Shown in pieces: positions 24,001 to 58,930 of a DNA stretch of 64,000 nucleotides (the first letter of the stretch is position 1; each line of letters starts with the position of its first letter). The notes under the pieces are model-generated. The model made no database searches and had not been told where the DNA came from. It saw only the letters and a list, made by a program, of their open reading frames with translations. Source of the DNA: Convolutriloba macropyga (taxonomy: Eukaryota); contig NC_134473.1 of assembly GCF_964194025.1 (NCBI RefSeq), forward strand, positions 5,332,001 to 5,396,000. Reading direction: 5' to 3'. The position numbers were made by a program, and so were the translations under genes.

Positions 24001-24572
24001 AGGACATTCAAAAAGCCTACAACTATTTTTGTACAAAATGTTCCAAAATACCACCAAACGTCAAATTATGGCCCAGTTGTGCCTCTATTTTGTCTCAAAA
24101 TAAAAAAAAATGCGGGTTTTCACTTCAAAAAATTCCAAAGCTAATTGAGTAGTTGCCATGTCGCCAGAGCTCACAAGAAAGTAAAAATGTTCACAATATG
24201 CTCAAAACTGATTGTACTTCAGTTTTTAGCAAAGGCTGCCACTTACAAATTATCAATGATTATGTCATCTAGCTTCAACGAAATTCTACGAAGGCAAGTA
24301 GGAATAAATGCGAGTAAAAAGTCAAGACAGAAGGTAATATTTTTCAAATAAAGCAAAGCAGGTGACGAGCTGATAGAAAATTAAACAAAGCTCAACGTTT
24401 TTGTTCACAAAGTATGCATTAAAACGAGTTTATTTTAACACGTGCATCTAAATGATACTGAACGCAAAAAAGCACCAAAATAAAAACCACCAATCTTATT
24501 TTTACGTTTCATTCGAACTGTTTGCTTGCTACAGCAGTGATCACCAATTCCAGCAAAAACCGTGTAAATAAA

Positions 24573-25775
24573 ATGGCCGTGCCTTATTCAAACACAAAGC
24601 TAAGACCTCCGCGAGGTTTTCAGAACCTTCTAGAAGGATTGGCACGCGAAGTTCTCAGAAATCAACCAGCAGATATCCCTTCATTTGCCGCACAGTACTT
24701 CGCCGACCTCCTACAACGCCGAGAGGAAGGCGGGTACGATCCGGAGGGCTTCCTAGATCCTGCTAACTTGGGTGCCAAGCATGAAGATCGGTACTATAAC
24801 TACGACAAAAAAGAGGCCTTAAGACAACCCGACCTATCAAAATCCCCAACGCCGCCTTCTGAGGGCAGGCCAAAGTCCAGACCTATGAGCTCGAAGCTGT
24901 CACGAGCACCTCCCGCAGAACCGGCGGAGCAAGAAACAGAAGTTTCACAGGAAGCAGAGCCTTCTGCCGAAGAACAAGCACCCGAAGTCACTGTGGAGCC
25001 GGAAGCAGAACCCGAAACAGCTCCTGAAGTTGAGGCACCTCAAGTAGAAGAGCAAGTCCATGCAGAAAGTGCTCCTCAAGAAACGGAACAAGAAGCTCCA
25101 CCTGTCGTAGACGATGCAGAACCAACTAGCACCGAAGCTGAACAAGAACCCGAACAGACAACAGCTGAAGAGGATTCACCGGCAGACGCTCCTGACGATG
25201 TGGAACAAAACCAGGAGCCAGCACCTCAGCAAGAAGAACAAGAGCCGGAACAAACCGAAGTTGCCGAGGACCCAAGCGAGGCTGCAGAACCAGACGAGGG
25301 TGTCGAGACTGGTCGAACTGAAGAGGAACCCCCTGTTGAAGACGAAACGCAGGATGAACAACCCGTAGAGGAAACACCAGCCGATGAAGAGCAAACTACG
25401 GAGGGCGAGGCTGAACAAACAGCAGAGCCAGAAACTGCTGAAGAACAAGTTAACGAAGCTGAGAACGTCGATCAAGAGCCCGCAGCTGATGGCGACCCAG
25501 AGGCTGAAACCGAAGCCGAGCCAGTAGCAGAACCAGAGCAGACAGCATTACCCGATGAGCCAACCGAAGGCGAAGCACCGGAAGAACCAGCCACTGAAAC
25601 TCAGGAAGAACAACCCGGCCCTGCAGAAGAACCGGCGGCTGAGGAACAACCAGCTGACAAAACCGCAGCCAATGAGGAAACAGAACCAGCACCTTCAGGT
25701 GAAGTTGAACAACCCGAAGATAACGAAGCACCTGCAGCTGAAGGCGATGTTGAACAGACAGAAAATGAGGCTTAA
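24573..25775 (+). CDS. SPA17: sperm surface protein Sp17-like: N-terminal RIIa dimerisation/docking domain plus long Glu/Pro/Ala-rich disordered tail
   Basis: MAVPYSNTKLRPPRGFQNLLEGLAREVLRNQPADIPSFAAQYF and EDRYYN match the Sp17 N-terminus; ATG in AAAATGG context; single open frame. Confidence 0.8.
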   Translation: MAVPYSNTKLRPPRGFQNLLEGLAREVLRNQPADIPSFAAQYFADLLQRREEGGYDPEGFLDPANLGAKHEDRYYNYDKKEALRQPDLSKSPTPPSEGRPKSRPMSSKLSRAPPAEPAEQETEVSQEAEPSAEEQAPEVTVEPEAEPETAPEVEAPQVEEQVHAESAPQETEQEAPPVVDDAEPTSTEAEQEPEQTTAEEDSPADAPDDVEQNQEPAPQQEEQEPEQTEVAEDPSEAAEPDEGVETGRTEEEPPVEDETQDEQPVEETPADEEQTTEGEAEQTAEPETAEEQVNEAENVDQEPAADGDPEAETEAEPVAEPEQTALPDEPTEGEAPEEPATETQEEQPGPAEEPAAEEQPADKTAANEETEPAPSGEVEQPEDNEAPAAEGDVEQTENEA

Positions 25776-49094: not shown

Positions 49095-49440
49095 AAAATT
49101 GTAGAGGGTACTAACCATAGGCTCTTTCGATCTACCAGCAACTGGCAAAACTTAGACGAAGCTCTAAAATTCAACAAAAACATATGGCGAAAAATTCAAT
49201 ATCCGGAAAATTGGTCGACAGGCATTGTAAAATCAGACAATCGGAAAAATTTTAGGTGACTAAAAAAACCTCAAAAAGAAAAGAGGAATGCGAGTCAAAC
49301 AATAAGCTGAAGCAGAATGACACACCCACACTTTTCTTACAATATAGAGGCCAATTAAGCATTAGACTTACAGAAAAGCTACAAAAGATAAACCATCTTA
49401 CAGTGATCTACAAAACACGGAAACTATAAACCTAGTTGAG
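49095..49440 (+). mobile_element. short Penelope-like fragment (RT thumb/linker region)
   Basis: Translates IVEGTNHRLFRSTSNWQNLDEALK..QYPENWSTGIV and PTLFLQYRG..YKTRKL, homologous to VQGTVHSIFNAT..QYP of the PLE at 51051-51248. Confidence 0.7.
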
Positions 49441-50199
49441 ACCAAAAAATTGTTCACCCCCTTTTGGGAAGGGAAAACCTGAGCAACACGAGGTTATAGC
49501 AAACGGTTAGGGTAACCTATAAGCTATCCATGGACCCATGAACGTTATGGCATCATACCCACAGTTGTGGCTATTAGCACTTTTATGATGCAAAATTGGC
49601 ATTTTTTGATAGTTTGTCAACTATTAATTTTTTTGATATATTGTCATTTATGAAATTTGTGAAATTGTTTATTTTATGATAATTTAGTTCATTAGAGCTC
49701 TAAATGACTCAAACCCTACATTTGAGTCATTCAGAGCTACGTAATAACCATCGCTGCTAATGTCAACAAAAGCAAACATTGCAGTAATTTGACATTTACT
49801 ACGTAAACAGATAATTAAAGACCTTTACCTAATTAAACAAAAAGAAACAAATGATAACGATGTCATAATTGAAATGTACCTGATTTTTCACCCGAATCGT
49901 TTGAATAGTAAAATCATTTTGTTTTTAGAGCCATTGGAAACTGTTACCCATAGCTGTTGGCTCTCAGATTAGAATATAACTTGGTTCTTTAATAATTGTA
50001 GTGTTTTATGATAAATTTTGCTAGATATTAAAGTTATTTAATTTCTAATTTACTTAAGTTTTCATGACAAGACTTAAGAAACATTACTAACACTGGCTTA
50101 AGCTTTATACACTTCAGCGCGTAATTGAACATGGATTATCACAATAGGATTTTCTTTTCTTCATTCAAAATGAAATTACATTAGAGCAGAAGTAATTGT

Positions 50200-52780
50200 C
50201 AATTAAAACATGAATTGATTTAAAACACGAACGTTTTCGAACATTGCGTTCATCGTCAGGTTTAAAAACGAAGTATATAATTTTGCTTTGACTCTAATTC
50301 TAAGAAATAAATTGAACTAAAATCGAATTTCTGAAATCATCTACAGTTAAAATTGCATTTCAATCATTTTATTTACACTTATTACACTAAAATCATTTGC
50401 ATTTTTATTCTGGAGTTTTTGAAAATCCCGGGTACAATGCTTTATATTCCGGAGAAAGGATTTTCACTTTCATTCCTATCTGCTTTTAATTTTTATTTGT
50501 TGGGGGTGACAAAGTTTCGAATTAACATGTATCAGAATAGTTTTTGAATTCTAAAAGTCAAATTGTTGCATTTGAACTAATACTTCAATGTCAATTCCCG
50601 CCTCGCCAATTGATTGCGGTTTCAGCTCTTTGATGCAGATCGCTTCTGTCGTCATTAGTTTTTCAACCCCGCGACATGTATCAAGAATCTCCCATTCAGT
50701 ATTATGCGCTGTACCACAACATTCAACGAGGTGTTGTCCCTCAGGGGAATCCTTCTTTTGATGCTCTGTAGTTCTAGTGGCAACATGTCGGCAGGTTTGG
50801 CCAACATAGATGGAACTGCAGCCATTACATGTAACTTTATATACCACATTGGATTTCATATTCTTATCAAAAGATGATTTCAGGGTGGGCAAGCAAGTTC
50901 TTAGCTTTCTTGATGTGAAAATGATTTAAATATCACACAATTTTTTTCAGTATACTTGCAAAATTTTGAGTAATATTTTCTCTCTATTGAACAAAAAACC
51001 TCAGTTTAGGTTCCCTATTGTTAAGATTTTTTACTTTTCTGAGATGTTGTTCAATTTGGGGGGAGGGGATTTGTTGTGACCTTTTCCCTCGTGACTATTA
51101 TATCCAACGTCCCGTTAACAATACTAGAGCACCGCTCAGTTGGATATTGATTTTCTGTCCCAATCTCCTGACTTTTCTTGAGAGCTACATTAAAGGATTG
51201 CCAGTAACCGGTCGCATTGAAAATACTATGCACAGTCCCTTGAACCACATTTTTCTTATGTCGTAATGGTGCACAGCTACGGAAATTTAGGACTATTCCA
51301 GTATCAGTGGATTATGATACCAATGACAGCTAATTTTTCGATCTTAGTTCAAGTTTATGTTTAGATCTAGAAATGCCAAGTCTCCACTACCGTTTGGTGT
51401 CTCAAGAATGAATTGTAACTTCTTGTGAGGAAAATTTGCATACTCAAGGTGATCTAGAGGGTTCCCCTTGACCGTGCATACTATATCATCTACATCCTTT
51501 CTGAATAAACTCAATTCCTGTGTGTCCTCTTTTGTGTTTTATTCCGCACATTAGGAACAGGTCCAAACAATGTTCTGCATGGTCACATACTCTGTGTTAG
51601 TGATGTCTTGGCTTTTTGCATGAAACCAGTTTTTGCATGGTTCGCACTCGACCCCTTTCCCTCAGAAAGTAACGCGTCGGTTACAGTCATTTCATATCAC
51701 CTTTTTGTGAGGAGTATTGTTCTCCCTTCCCTCATTTGGTTTCTGTAGGCATTCTTCAAAATATTTCATCCATAAATTTGCCAAAATTACCGCCAGCGAA
51801 GCACCCATTGCTAAACCGTCCAATTGAGTGTACCACATTTTATTACCCTTAGAGTGAACATTAGCTACGGCTAGTCTCAAAAGGCTCTTTATTGCTGACC
51901 TCGGAATCTCAGGTACCTCGTCAGTGGAGTACAGTTATTTAAGCTCAATTTCAATTGCCTCCTCAATCGGTACATTTGTGTAAAATCTTTTAACATCGAA
52001 AGATACAACTAGCTCATCTCCATCCAATTTGATGGCCTCTAGATCGGCTCTGGCATATTTCGATTTAGTTTCAATATTTGCATCCGGTAACCTCTCAAAA
52101 AAGGGAGAGAGAAATTTATTGAGGTTCTCGTAACTGCTACCAGGTATTGACAGAAGAAGCCGAAGCAGCGTACTGCTTTTATGAACTTTAGCAAGTCCAT
52201 AAGGCCTGGTCGGTTATAATCCAGTTGCCCTCAGCCGTTGATAAATTTTTTCACTTATCTTTCCCTGTTTAATTAATTAGTGCAAACTGCAATTTATCAG
52301 TTTCTCCGTTTTATTTTTGGATCAGCACTTTCTCCATTACGAAATTCAAACTGACTAGAACTGAGGATTTCATTTAGTTTTTCCGAGTATGTTGTCTGTT
52401 TCATAAACAAAAACAGCAACCACTATCAAATGGTATAGCTAGTAGTTTTTGATCTTTCAAAAAGTCATTAGCTTCTTTAACCCTTGTATCCATTGGTGTC
52501 TCACGTAATTTCCTGACGTACCATTTGTCAGACAATTTTATTTCACATAACTTATCACCATCAGTGTTGTTCTCCCTTAACTCACAAACTAGTCTTTCTA
52601 CATCCGCAAGGGAGTGCACTTCATTAAATTTGTCCCTGACCGGATGCTTTGGACCTCATGATAAGACGTCCAGGACAACTTTGGCAGTTCAGTTCCGTCC
52701 AGTGTAACAACATCATTATGAGATCCATTCCGCAAAGGCCTGTCCTGTCTCACAGACAGTCCTTCAATGAGTCCGAACGA
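50200..52780 (-). mobile_element. Penelope-like retroelement (RT with internal PHD finger + C-terminal GIY-YIG), 5'-truncated, decayed
   Basis: GPKHP, IPFDSG (DKG motif), YGLAKVHK, SFDVKRFYTNVP, QLDGLAMGASLA, DVDD, AFLD, VVYKVTCNGC..YVGQT..R..EH; ORF ends RELTLKY* at ~50577. Confidence 0.93.
50215..50268 (-). ncRNA. minimal type I hammerhead ribozyme motif in the PLE 3' region
   Basis: TTTAAAC-CTGACGA-T-GAAC gcaat GTTC-GAA-AACGTT-C-GTGTTTTAAA: CUGANGA and GAAA core, 4-bp stem II, palindromic stem III, UC cleavage site; stem I imperfect. Confidence 0.7.
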
Positions 52781-55700
52781 TTGGTTTCTTCTACAAGAAT
52801 ATTAGACAATCGGATTCACTGAAGAACCAGGCCGGCAAAGATCTCGAAAAACGGGCTGTGATATTCGTTACAGCCGAGATTTTTGAGCAGCAACATTTGA
52901 TTTGCTGACCCAGACAACAACACGAGCAGTAACGAATCTTCAATTCAATTTCGTGTACTAAAACAAAATGCTTGCTATGGCTGGAGAGAGCCCCGAAAGA
53001 TATTTGAAAACGACTGAATGCAACATTTCAGTCCCATTCCGGAGATTAGAAAATGAGCAAATTGGATTGTTCAAAAAATTGGTTTTGTCCGGACATACGA
53101 TGATTTGGAAAAAAAATTGACGCCAAAAGCGGCAAATTTGGAACCAAAATTATTTGAAGAATTTCGATGCTGACACAGAACGCGATATGGGCGAAAAGAA
53201 GAAGACACTCAAATGGCTAGTTGAACAAATACTAAAACTTGGAAAAACTGAAAATTATCGCAGCTGCTTTTTCAACAATCGAAAAGACACTTTGCTATTC
53301 TAAACAATAGCCGAAAAATACACATGGCTTTACAGTGAAGCAACTCGAGGAAGATCTGGAACTGAAAATTAAGACGACTCCTGCAAGCAAGCATTGCGTA
53401 GCAAACTGGAACAGCTGTTAATGAAATTAGATTCAACTAACGAATAAATCATACAAATTGTGCATTCAGACACTACTACGGTCTGGTTGACGACTTTAAG
53501 TGAGAATAATTATTATTGTCGACTTATGCTAAAACAGTACCTGCAAACCTGCAAACCTGCAAAAGGAAATCAAATATTGCTGTTGTCATCAATATCGGCT
53601 GTTGTTAAAAACCTATATGAGACTTTAATTGAGTCAAGAAATGGAGCAAAAAGAATTGTCGAAGACAATGTTGAGGTCTCTTCTAGGCATTCTGCTACAC
53701 AGGGAAGCAAAAAAGAACCCAGTCAACTCGCGATCGTCCAGAAGGCAACAGATTGACAAAATGGCGCTTGAAAACCTAAGAGCTGAAAAACAGCTAAAAC
53801 CGAGAGCTAAAATCGGGAGCGTTAGTTGGAGTTTGAACATAAGCGTGAAGAAGTAGAACTACGTTGTCGGCGAAAATAATTACATTTACGGCAAAAACAT
53901 CATCAACAACAACAACAACAGAAATTACGTCTAATGTTGAAACAAGAAGAAGACAAACTACGTCTGCGACACCAAAAGTGAGCCTCTGAAAATGACTAAA
54001 GAAAACTCAAGCCGATGAAGAGCGAGGGCTTCTGGAAATTGAACAAAAAAAAATTCAGGAGCATCTGTGTTGCAGGCAGACGACTTAGAAGGAGTTGGAT
54101 TAAAATAACGGCAGGCAGTCAGATTCAGTGGCCCATCAGGTTGGCCCTAGACGGCCAATATCTTCTATTGCTGCGACTCATCCTCCTAAGAATTCCACAC
54201 ATGACAGAGATGAAAAACCTTTCAGCGTCTTCCAGAAAACTACCCCCATTGTTCCAACCCGTTGTAGGACATTTCTCAACGCAAATTCCTAAATCAATTA
54301 GGACGACTCAACCGCAAACGCATTTGCCCTTGACGACGTTCCAGCAATAAGGCACGTCAGCATTTCAAAACAAATACAGAAGCCAGAGTCCCAAGCACAA
54401 CTCTCGTCCTTTAGCATCTAATGTTGAAGATTCTACAAAATTAAAAGATTCAGAATGTCCATTCAAAAATTGACTGCACGCCATCTGGTGTTGCAAAAAA
54501 ACTAAAACAATTAACTGAATGAACAACGAGAACATGTGCAGAAGTTCAGATTTTGTTTCAAGTGTCTGGGACCTGGTCATCGATCAAGGACTTGCAAAAG
54601 TAGAACTTGCAGTAAACCCATTTATGGACGGCGACAATTTTTTGCACTGTGACTTCTCTAAGAAAGAGGCTACGACAAGTGCTTCAGTTTCTACGACAGC
54701 TGTAGCGGCAATCATCACACGAGGAGGACTCCCTGTGGCGCTCATCGAATTACTTTATGGTAGCCGCACCTCCCCGTACTAGCAATGTGTGATACATGAT
54801 CCTCATTTGTCTTGTAGGTAAGTCAATCGTATCTACACTGCAACTGCAAGGCCGAAAAGCGTCTTTGTCAGTAGCAGGAATCCATGAATCGAAAGATGTC
54901 AAGAGTAAAATAGTACCGATAGTTCGACCATTGACAACATTCCAATTTTTTTTGTTCATGAAAACCTGAAATTGGGATCTGCAAGGGTTGAAAGATTGCT
55001 ACTCACTTTGAGGATTTTGTCAAATCAGAGCTACAATCTGAACAAATTTCAATTTATTCTTTGACAAGACTGTTATAACATCCCTTACCCATTAGATTTC
55101 AAATTCAGACAATAAACTTTCACCGTTTGCAGTGAAATTGAAACTAGGATGGGCGTCCTCTACCAGTGAAGCAAGCAGCAACGCCTGCTACAACAGCAAC
55201 GTTAACCGCAGAAGACAAGTGACAAAGCTAGTTGATTAGATGTTGGAACATTAAATCCTATGCCTCAAACTGTGATGTCACAGGTCAATGGAAAGATGAA
55301 GAGAGAGTAATCAAACAGTAGAGCAAACAATTCAATTCATCGATTAATCCGATACAAGTGACAATGAGACAATGATGTTATAAATTTTTTACCTGATTAT
55401 TTACTTTAATCGAATTGTTTGAATAGTGCAACCATTTTATATCTAGAACCATAAGAAACTGTTACCAAGAGCAGTTGGCTCTAACTTGATTACGCTAGAA
55501 CTTGATTCCTTAGTAATATTATTGTTTTATGCTAAGTTAAGATCTTGCGATTTCTAAGTTAGTTTGTCAATCATGACAAGAATTTATTAACTTGACTAAC
55601 ACTGGTTGAAGCCTTACAAACGTCAGCACGAGATTGAACTCAGATTATCACAACGAATTTCCTTAATTTCAAAATTGAAGTTACAGGCCTCTAATACGTA

Positions 55701-56679
55701 CGAGAGAATAATTGTTTCTATGAGATTATTAGACAATTGGAATCAGTGAAGAACCAGGCCGGCATAGAGCCTGAGAGCCAGGTTCTGATGTACTGGATGC
55801 CATTCTGTCTATGTCGGATACACTTTCAGACACATAACCACGCGAATGGCAGAACATCAATTAAAGTATTCAACGGTAGGCTAGTATGTAAGCCAATGTT
55901 GTGGCACATCACGCGCGTTTGATTGCCGTATAATGAGCCAGTGCAACGCGAAAAAAGTTTTGACTCTCGAAACAAAATATATAGCACAAACGAGGCCACT
56001 GCTGAACACATGTAATTGGTACCGAAGCCAAGAGTTGACATAGAAATACTAGTTAGCAGTTGTCACTTTATTCAATTCGAAAAAAATACTTTAGCGAATC
56101 AAAACCTTGAAATGTTCCAAAATGTTACCGAAACGGTAGAATTCAAATGCTATGCGAAAATCAAAAATTGAAAGATTCAAAGATGTTGATAAGAAAATCG
56201 AAAACGCATTGGAAAAAGAAATTACAGAAACTTTGTTTTTATGATAAACAATATTCCAAGAACCTCTTACTTTACAAATTTGCTTTTTAATTGAATTTGA
56301 TTCATTTCAATTGGAAATAGATTAAATTTTGTTGCGTTTGACTTGATGACGCTAGTTATAGCGGATATGTTTGTAAATTAAATTTAAAATTGACTTAAAT
56401 TTTTAAAAAAAATTAGACTATCAAAATACAATTTAACTGCCTAACAAGTAGATCATTAGTGCAAATCAGGAAATCATAATTAGTATATTAGTATATTAGT
56501 GCAAGTGCAAATTATCAACAGCATGGGCGAACAAAAAAGTCTTTTGCTAAGATCACAGGTAACCGAAATACCTCAATACTTCTTTTTTCAACACAACAGC
56601 TAGAAAAAGGAACAATCGATTTTGATCTCTGCGAATACTAAACATCGAAACAACAAACATGAAGGATTTTTTAAAAGAT

Positions 56680-57289: not shown

Positions 57290-58930
57290 ATTCTTATTTT
57301 AGAAACAAACTTTTTCGAGCTTTAAAATCATCGCCAGGTTAAAACTGTTACCCTAATTGTAGAGGGTAGGGATAAAATGAAAATGTATTTTCTGATACCA
57401 TAATTTAAACAATTCTAAGGAAAATCTAAAAATCTTCAAATCGAAAAGTTTCATATACATAATATTTACATTTTCATTTTTAAATCATTTATCTTTTTTA
57501 AGAAATTTTCTTTCCTGGTTTTTTATTTTAGTTATGTTATTGTATTTCTAGGGTAACTCAGAAATTTGTCCTAACCCTAAGCTTTCCTCTTGTACAGATT
57601 TTGCAGGTTTCGTTCAACAATGCGGAAAAAAATTTTTGCTTTATTGTTTTAGATCAACATCCAATACATATCACGTATCACGTGAGACTAGAGATATTTG
57701 TCTCAAGGTAATTTTAGGTCGGTGAGGCACATTAATAATTTTTGCGTTGTGAATTTATTTCGCAATCCATATAAATTTTTCAGTGTGCTAGCAAAACTTT
57801 GCGTTTAGTTGCCTCTCTATTGTAGCAAAATTGTTGGTTTTCATGAGATCTAGTCTGGTTTTTCTGAAGGTCTTTGTTTCTTGTACTCAATATATTTTTA
57901 CTTCCAATTATTATCTTCTATAAATTCTTGTTCACTGTTTACAAAGACTATTCATAAGACTATTGCTTTTTGGTTACCCAGTTCATGTTTTCTTTCATGC
58001 ACCAGATCGAAGGCTAATCAAATAATTGTCGCGTTCGAAAACCGTGTGAACTTTCTCTTAAAACCACTTTTTGCTTCTTTTGAAGAGGTGAGCAGCGGCG
58101 AAAATTCAGTTTTATTCCTGTTTCAGTTGCTTTTGTGTACCAAAAACAGTAAGGTGTATTATCGTTGCTCACCTTTACCAATGACATCAAGCCATATGTC
58201 TTTAACACTTTCTGAAACTTATTGCTTGTTTTTGTGTTACGAAATTGCAAATGTTAAGTATTTGCTCGATTCAGCACTAACTGTGCAAATAATGCAGTCC
58301 ACATTCCTTTTGAACAATCCTTTACTTTAACTTAGTTGTTCATTGCCTTATTAGGTACCAAAAAACAATCATTCTCCATTATAAGGGTATTTTTTTACTT
58401 TTTTTTTTAGCTTTTTGCTAGAAATAGGTTTTTGCTTCACTCGAATTCGATAATTTTTTCTCAGAGACTGACCTATCGGTTGCATTCTTCAATTCTCATT
58501 ACGATCAGCTCTGGAGATTTTTCCACTGAGCTCTAATTTTGACTGGGATGCATCAAAAACTTCATCTATGCGTTTGATAGTTTTGAAGCTAGCGATTCAG
58601 CCAGAGCTGGATTATTCAATTGTACATATCAGATGCCGTTAAGCTTGAGTGGAACATTTGTAAATGCTAACTTTAATACTTTTTCAATTGGGTCTCTTGT
58701 GCCGTGTTGCTTGCGTAGAGTTTATTTGGAGCGATTTGATAAGCCTCTCTATCCGGCACATTGGTATACAAACTCTTGTAGTCAACAGATACTCTTTGCT
58801 TGACATCATCAAGACATAATTGAAAAAGAAGCACTTCTAGCATCTTTTGGGTTGGTTTAAATAGTTGCGTACGTTAGTTTCCGCATAAACGGTGCTAAAA
58901 CTTTTGTATTATTTCTTTAGGTTTGTTGAT
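57290..58930 (-). mobile_element. second, heavily decayed Penelope-like element with the same architecture
   Basis: SVDYKSLYTNVP, QLNNPALAESLASKLSNA*MK, PHD relic ECNR*VSL*EKIIEFE*SKNLFLAKS, GLFKRNVDCIICTV, WYTKATETGIKLNFRRCSPL, CIGC relic of the GIY-YIG region, hammerhead relic at ~57296-57346. Confidence 0.8.

Follow-up and report, generated by a model that had tools for sequence, protein, structure and literature searches.

A decayed Penelope-like element (PLE) in the genome of Convolutriloba macropyga carries a PHD zinc finger inside its reverse transcriptase (RT), where it separates motif B from the catalytic YVDD of motif C and stays in their reading frame. The element lies in a stretch of 64,000 nucleotides (NCBI RefSeq assembly GCF_964194025.1, contig NC_134473.1, positions 5,332,001 to 5,396,000 of the forward strand), which we refer to as the window and whose numbering is used throughout. 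A first-pass annotation of this DNA had proposed the arrangement from the letters alone. Our analysis confirmed that positions 51,548–51,694 on the minus strand are a real, decayed PHD finger, and in families that were active recently, intact proteins contain the same insert in frame, as a genuine PHD finger.

The PLE copy occupies positions 50,617–52,789 on the minus strand. It is decayed and truncated at its 5’ end, and comprises an RT followed by a GIY-YIG endonuclease (EN) at the C-terminus. In comparison to an intact protein of 868 amino acids from a related family it equates to residues 132–851, distributed over three frames with many stops; a tblastn search of the window with the open reading frame (ORF) of this protein returned the copy in 6 pieces with 52–69% identity. 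All landmarks were located on the minus strand, and the conservation of the DKG motif and of motifs B and C was assessed in an alignment of 116 PLE proteins that includes the 868-aa ORF. The remnant of the PLE-specific DKG motif region (52,404–52,436) reads ..PFDSG.. and aligns to D253-K254-G255, which are nearly invariant. The region of motif A (RT3) at 51,968–52,009, reading ..SFDVKRFYTNVP.., matches the invariant D397/S400/L401/Y402/T403/P406 block of another alignment, and the open piece 51,938–52,213 gave a match to RVT_1. Motif B (RT4; B’ in telomerase terms) was recognized in the translation at 51,767–51,826 as QLDGLAMGAS.. together with the next helix, and its G457, M460 and G461 are invariant. 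The catalytic ..VDD.. of motif C (RT5), which corresponds to the invariant D566/D567, is located at 51,479–51,502. Finally, the remnant of the GIY-YIG endonuclease, ..VVYKVTCNGCSSIYVGQT..R..EH.., was found by tblastn and translation at 50,614–50,847 in a frame that differs from the RT frame.

Six-frame translation places motif B, the PHD remnant and motif C in one minus-strand frame with zero frameshifts between them. The remnant has the C4HC3 spacing CxxC-x12-CxxC-x4-H-x2-C-x17-CxxC, in which two ligand positions are lost, one to an in-frame stop and one to a Ser codon. Two further stops are located inside the finger and one just downstream of it. Our translation is identical to the one given in the first-pass annotation, including the absence of a frameshift and the two lost ligands. 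The assignment of the remnant rests on this translation, on sister copies and on the Pfam PHD model.

We compared the insert with the Pfam PHD family (PF00628), for which the gathering cut-off is 24 bits. The window copy alone, represented by a 36-residue open piece (51,554–51,661), reached 23.4 bits. Open pieces of natural copies scored 31.7 and 27.4 bits and covered model positions 1–47 of 47, so that a PHD score above threshold is found on natural copies. Intact proteins likewise matched the full model (1–47) with 27.2, 26.4 and 28.9 bits. In the intact relative P0002 the order of domains is RVT_1 (174–322, covering model positions 1–143 of 205), PHD (338–386, full model), the remaining part of the RT and, last, GIY-YIG (PF01541; 614–691, above cut-off). 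The HMMER comparison proposed in the first-pass annotation therefore gave the expected picture, with PF00628 above cut-off over its full length and flanked by RT parts. Two more proteins, P0010 and P0056, showed RVT_1 followed by PHD above cut-off, and GIY-YIG was not reported for either at E≤0.01. In the precomputed Pfam 38 annotation the stronger PHD match is PHD_Pygo. When the whole 868-aa protein was compared with the sequences of the PDB, the matches were PHD fingers only. A profile built from 31 diverse PLE fingers ranked Pygo2 and Pygo1 at the top (E 3e-11), followed by KAT6A, MLL1 PHD3, TAF3, KMT2D, PHF1 and BPTF.

Structure prediction led to the same family. The full-length AlphaFold model of the 868-aa protein has a predicted local distance difference test score (pLDDT) of 92.3 and a predicted template modelling score (pTM) of 0.86, with the PHD blocks at 77–94. 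In this model the PHD is located between the motif-B helix (463–474) and the motif-C hairpin (561–573), connected by linkers of roughly 20 and 12 residues. For the RT part the best Foldseek matches in the PDB are structures of TERT (3du5, E 1.8e-7). The finger modelled on its own has a core pLDDT of about 90, and its top 50 fold neighbours in the PDB are PHD fingers throughout. The best PDB matches of this predicted fold have a root-mean-square deviation of 1.1–1.3 Å; for Pygo1 the deviation is 1.1 Å with a TM score of 0.81. In fold searches of AlphaFold DB and ESM Atlas the matches were generic PLE clusters, none of them listed with a PHD, and a protein search restricted to the region gave matches confined to the family of the query itself.

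A DNA search of the C. macropyga genome (1.18 Gb) yielded 941 first-look candidates. For the family of the window copy we compared 29 other copies, each 84–87% identical to it. The insert is present in all 29. All eight zinc ligands are kept in 17 of them, and each single ligand position is Cys or His in 24–28 copies; this retention is far above chance. The window copy itself is one of eight copies that make up an older subgroup, in which the terminal branches measure 6–10%.

A young related family comprises at least 20 loci with 98–100% protein identity and open frames of 868 or 869 aa. These young frames keep an intact PHD, which speaks against the possibility that intact members lack the insert. 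At the 12 loci that we compared, the DNA is 99.2–99.6% identical and the PHD pattern is intact in every case. The copies begin at varying 5’ positions, indicating 5’ truncation, and share a sharp 3’ end that is followed by unrelated, unique flanks. Ahead of full-length units the 3’-terminal ~250 nt are duplicated, forming a pseudo-long terminal repeat (pseudo-LTR). The depth of public sequencing runs on the young copy climbs toward the 3’ end. Young PHD-bearing families have thus been recently active. A third PHD-bearing family was noticed in the same genome; it is 61% identical to the young family, and an uninterrupted frame of 885 residues was seen in at least two of its copies (G000:C12:49892071-49894659 and G000:C2:73956932-73959520). 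At one locus (L034), positions 814–960 just upstream of a 5’-truncated young copy show a very high depth in the public runs, similar to that of the element 3’ end. This segment is not homologous to the element and is probably another high-copy repeat that received the young copy.

We next considered how the site and the finger are distributed among PLEs. An exhaustive HMMER search returned 21,134 relatives at E≤0.001, and the length of the spacer between motifs B and C was counted in the 78 representative clusters in which both motifs were located. In 73 clusters the spacer measures 26–39 residues and contains no Cys ligands, in line with the statement of the first-pass annotation that only a short segment separates B’ from YVDD in typical PLE RTs. 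Four clusters have a spacer of 94–108 residues with the finger, and one has 97 residues with a degraded ligand pattern. Further PHD-bearing families came from word-based sequence searches. From 78 proteins, 18 of them PHD-bearing, we calculated a maximum-likelihood tree after the insert had been excised. A single branch sets the 18 PHD-bearing rows apart from all others, with a support of 99 in the Shimodaira-Hasegawa-like approximate likelihood ratio test (SH-aLRT). On this insert-free tree one change of the trait suffices, and the finger thus belongs to a clade of PLEs as had been proposed; a single old gain is enough to account for its distribution. A PHD-less group is the sister of the PHD-bearing branch (support 96), and no loss of the PHD was seen among the 18 rows of the clade.

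Among 31 PHD segments with a mean column identity of 37%, the eight ligands and W57 never vary, and at least 90% of the segments have W36. In dead copies the ligand positions decay. Conservation across families as opposed to decay in dead copies is what purifying selection leaves behind when it acts over a long time following a single gain.

The PHD-bearing clade extends beyond C. macropyga. Divergent PHD-bearing families have a best match of only 43–55% identity in this genome, which indicates that they live in other hosts. One family was found in three marine metagenome assemblies, Tara Oceans included, and two families in another long-read assembly, ERZ25878734. Cluster look-ups for the PHD-bearing families gave a single host label, Symsagittifera roscoffensis; the protein with this label falls into one 90% cluster with one of the families, and the labelled fragment stops just before the insert. 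A PHD-less relative with ~38% identity carries the label Clytia hemisphaerica.

The elements show the hallmarks of PLEs, namely the DKG motif, a C-terminal GIY-YIG, a TERT-like RT fold, 5’ truncation and the pseudo-LTR. In the 868-aa ORF there is no CX2-5CxxC linker upstream of GIY-YIG, and two Cys are located in the GIY-YIG core. This combination fits Penelope/Poseidon as described (Craig, Yushenova, Rodriguez and Arkhipova 2021, PMC8557442). By comparison with clade descriptions, the window element is a C-terminal-EN PLE that may be of the Penelope/Poseidon type rather than Neptune, Nematis or Hydra. We did not find a hammerhead ribozyme at the Rfam gathering score or E≤1, either in window positions 49,500–53,500 or in a full-length young unit with pseudo-LTR (L036). 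Canonical C-terminal-EN PLEs usually carry such a ribozyme in the pseudo-LTR; this is typical, not universal. Naiad and Chlamys elements are likewise without a hammerhead (PMC8557442).

The stop at the first zinc-ligand codon of the window copy is a TGA (51,692–51,694). Two more copies of the older subgroup (L004 and L017) have it as well, and of the 29 other copies, 27 encode Cys here. In Naiad PLEs, recoding of UGA as selenocysteine is known to occur at conserved Cys positions (PMC8557442). We rejected such recoding for the first ligand here. The three copies form no resolved clade, Cys prevails at the position, and Rfam detected no selenocysteine insertion sequence (SECIS) in the window element or the full-length young unit. 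The TGA is therefore more likely decay or a minor shared variant.

PHD fingers have been described in PLEs before, in a different setting. Five Chlamys families of Chlamydomonas contain PHD insertions, located either in the stretch from RT2a to RT3(A) or in the EN, where they separate the conserved H from the conserved E. The authors suggest a chromatin-related role and also point out that CR1 elements and Rehavkus transposons have PHD fingers (PMC8557442). The assertion of the first-pass annotation that PHDs known from retroelements lie outside the polymerase does not hold, since the Chlamys PHDs between RT2a and RT3(A) are inside the RT (PMC8557442). The likeness to Chlamys consists in a single ORF with a PHD finger inserted inside a catalytic domain. 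Chlamys elements, however, have an N-terminal GIY-YIG that lacks Zn-finger motifs, a CxC motif and an insertion in fingers domain (IFD), and they inhabit green algae. The PLEs studied here differ from this pattern: their EN is C-terminal, their hosts are animals or belong to the marine plankton, and their PHD is located between RT4(B) and RT5(C). Given the different EN position, hosts and PHD site, the acquisition was almost certainly independent of Chlamys. The animal PLE architectures described in the same paper include no mention of a PHD (PMC8557442), and we found no other paper linking PHD fingers with PLEs in the searchable literature, a search that does not extend to the curated repeat libraries Repbase and Dfam; where other papers contain both terms, PHD occurs just in funding statements or reference lists. 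The claim that the architecture was undescribed can thus be upheld in part only: a PHD inside a PLE RT had been published (PMC8557442), but the RT4-RT5 site in C-terminal-EN animal PLEs appears to be undescribed.

With canonical C-terminal-EN PLEs (Penelope/Poseidon) the elements share the DKG motif, the RT core, a C-terminal GIY-YIG with two core Cys and without the CX2-5CxxC linker, as well as 5’ truncation, partial tandems with pseudo-LTRs and the TERT-like RT fold. The canonical elements differ in that their B-to-C segment has 26–39 residues and no PHD, and in that they usually carry hammerhead ribozymes. The IFD of telomerase and Naiad is comparable in that it, too, is inserted into the core of a TERT/PLE-group RT and is specific to a lineage. 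It is helical rather than a zinc finger and lies between RT3(A) and RT4(B) (PMC8557442), a site different from the one between RT4 and RT5, as the first-pass annotation had correctly pointed out. Target-primed retroelements with an ORF1-encoded PHD likewise encode the finger themselves, but as part of a separate ORF1 protein outside the polymerase. In chromoviral (Ty3/gypsy) elements the integrase carries a chromodomain, a chromatin-reader module on the integration machinery that biases the choice of target. The likeness to this chromodomain is functional only and applies if the PLE finger reads chromatin, in which case the finger would be its PLE counterpart. The chromodomain has another fold, is positioned at the C-terminus of an integrase and belongs to a DNA-integration mechanism, whereas the PLE finger is nested in a target-primed RT.

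The closest relative of the finger by profile, fold and precomputed Pfam match is the PHD of Pygopus (Pygo1/2), a reader of H3K4me2/3 that also binds the homology domain 1 (HD1) of BCL9. In some PLE families the similarity includes the ..YPCG.C.. start and the ..W[FY]HR.CT.. core. The second ligand pair differs, with Cx2C spacing in the PLE finger as against Cx3C in Pygo, and many PLE families end in CxC. The context differs as well, a polymerase loop in one case and a Wnt co-activator in the other.

On these grounds we propose that the finger may bind the N-terminal tail of histone H3, tether the particle of RT/EN and RNA to nucleosomes and bias the sites at which target-primed reverse transcription (TPRT) starts, a reading that we regard as having an even chance of being correct. 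The clade would have acquired, once, a PHD finger most like that of Pygopus and would have kept it since. Sitting in the RT palm, in a surface loop that leads from the motif-B helix to the motif-C hairpin as predicted by the model, the finger would protrude from the outer face of the palm; in RT structures in general the loop between motifs B and C is found on this face, away from the template-primer cleft. Binding to the H3 tail would probably depend on the methyl state of K4. It would hold the particle at nucleosomes of one chromatin state and in this way influence where nicking and TPRT begin.

In favor of tethering, the nearest relatives of the finger in sequence and fold read the N-terminal tails of histones, in most cases the methyl states of H3K4. 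In the ..W[FY]H..C motif, the conserved Trp is aligned to W1594 of MLL1 PHD3 (..RWVH.. motif), and Y507 of the 868-aa protein aligns with the Tyr counted as MLL1 Y1581; we take both MLL1 residues to be part of the methyl-lysine cage. Asn and Gly occupy the remaining two positions of the cage. Several observations weigh against the proposal. In the young family, aromatic residues occupy just two of the four cage positions of the MLL1 type, and the pattern varies between families. Only some PLE families have the Tyr that precedes the first Cys in Pygo and BPTF. A complex predicted from the PHD, two zinc ions and residues 2–41 of unmethylated H3 from the same genome scored 0.31, below the mark of 0.34, a result that counts neither for nor against binding. 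Some PHD fingers bind non-histone peptides or H4. Furthermore, the flanks of 12 young insertions showed no obvious common feature beyond A/T-rich starts. The lack of a shared motif in the 3’ flanks is compatible with a target choice independent of sequence and proves nothing.

A more far-reaching version of the tethering proposal is that animal PLEs captured a Pygopus-like, H3K4-methyl-reading PHD from a host gene into the RT palm, and that the RT recognizes nucleosomes of active chromatin and directs integration there to this day. We put this forward tentatively and regard it as rather doubtful in this complete form; descent of the PLE finger from a host Pygopus gene is a lead.

A number of other explanations have to be weighed against tethering. 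The finger might be functional and have a ligand other than a histone, such as a host or element protein or another N-terminal peptide, or play a part in nuclear import or particle assembly and not in the choice of target. The Pygopus PHDs, its closest profile and fold relatives, bind BCL9 HD1 through a second surface, and the complexes PHF2-VRK1 and MLL3 PHD6-H4 are included in its fold matches. We nevertheless consider a non-histone partner unlikely: the best-conserved residues apart from the ligands are the two Trp typical of a histone-tail groove, and nearly all of the nearest solved relatives are H3 readers. Quite improbable in our view is a zinc module that stabilizes the palm or contacts template RNA or target DNA and does not read chromatin. 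Such a role would suit the position of the finger next to the catalytic hairpin and the richness of the segment in Lys and Arg. The fair confidence of placement in the full-length model (pLDDT 77–94 for the finger at the overall pTM of 0.86) also suggests that the finger may pack against the RT and not float freely. However, the PHD-less sisters and most PLEs function with a loop of 26–39 residues, which argues that the RT has no need of the finger, and the fold and profile matches are PHDs of the reader type, not nucleic-acid-binding fingers.

That the insert has no function itself and is carried along neutrally because a permissive surface loop tolerates it, we regard as very improbable. The RT4-RT5 loop does vary in length among other PLEs (26–39 aa), and accessory domains have been gained and lost in PLEs (Craig et al. 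2021, PMC8557442). Yet the eight ligands and two Trp were kept at a mean identity of 37% in several hosts and with no loss in the 18 rows of the clade, and the free decay of the ligands in dead copies demonstrates what neutrality looks like. The chance that the finger is an artefact, be it a fortuitous Cys/His pattern, a chimeric assembly or an intron removed from the mRNA, is close to negligible. Pfam scores exceed the gathering cut-off, the 868-aa frame is uninterrupted, and the insert recurs at dozens of independent loci, in other assemblies and in metagenomes. In addition, no GT..AG joint that excises the finger was found on the young copy in four public runs, which consist of short contigs of unstated library type that are not on record as RNA and are silent on transcripts.

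The surroundings of the element in the window are a patchwork of PLE debris. A second PLE copy, older and more decayed, was detected by tblastn at 57,667–58,913 on the minus strand; its identity to the 868-aa protein is ~30%. A remnant of the same PHD insert separates motif B from motif C in this copy, at roughly 58,270–58,620; its translation has a decayed ..CNR.V....E.E..KN.F.. stretch followed by ..LFKRNVD... The presence of this older copy indicates that PHD-bearing PLEs have a long history of insertion in this genome. Short PLE fragments with parts of thumb/linker and GIY-YIG were noticed on the plus strand at 49,098–49,426 and 55,789–56,049 (45–55% identity to the 868-aa protein). Apart from PLE sequences, a GC-rich island is located at 24,522–25,775 on the plus strand (GC 0.45 in comparison to ~0.35 around it). 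It encodes an ORF of 417 aa whose N-terminus resembles an RIIa-type dimerisation/docking domain and is followed by a long acidic tail rich in Glu, Pro and Ala; this ORF is probably an exon of a host gene.

The choice of chromatin sites by target-primed retroelements is poorly understood, and the known tethering devices are mostly from integrase-based elements. A reader-type domain next to the catalytic hairpin that is conserved over deep divergence and present in a family whose open, almost identical copies number in the dozens offers a testable system for chromatin-guided TPRT. The finding further shows that the RT4-RT5 loop is able to take a whole folded domain, which bears on the evolution of RTs, where TERT and PLEs diversify by insertions elsewhere, as well as on the engineering of RT fusions. 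By adding animal-type PLEs and a new site to the precedent published for Chlamys, it suggests that PLEs have recruited PHD fingers repeatedly and independently. If the capture of a Pygopus-like reader were true, these elements would represent an RT to which a chromatin reader has been fused in nature and which is still active in this genome.

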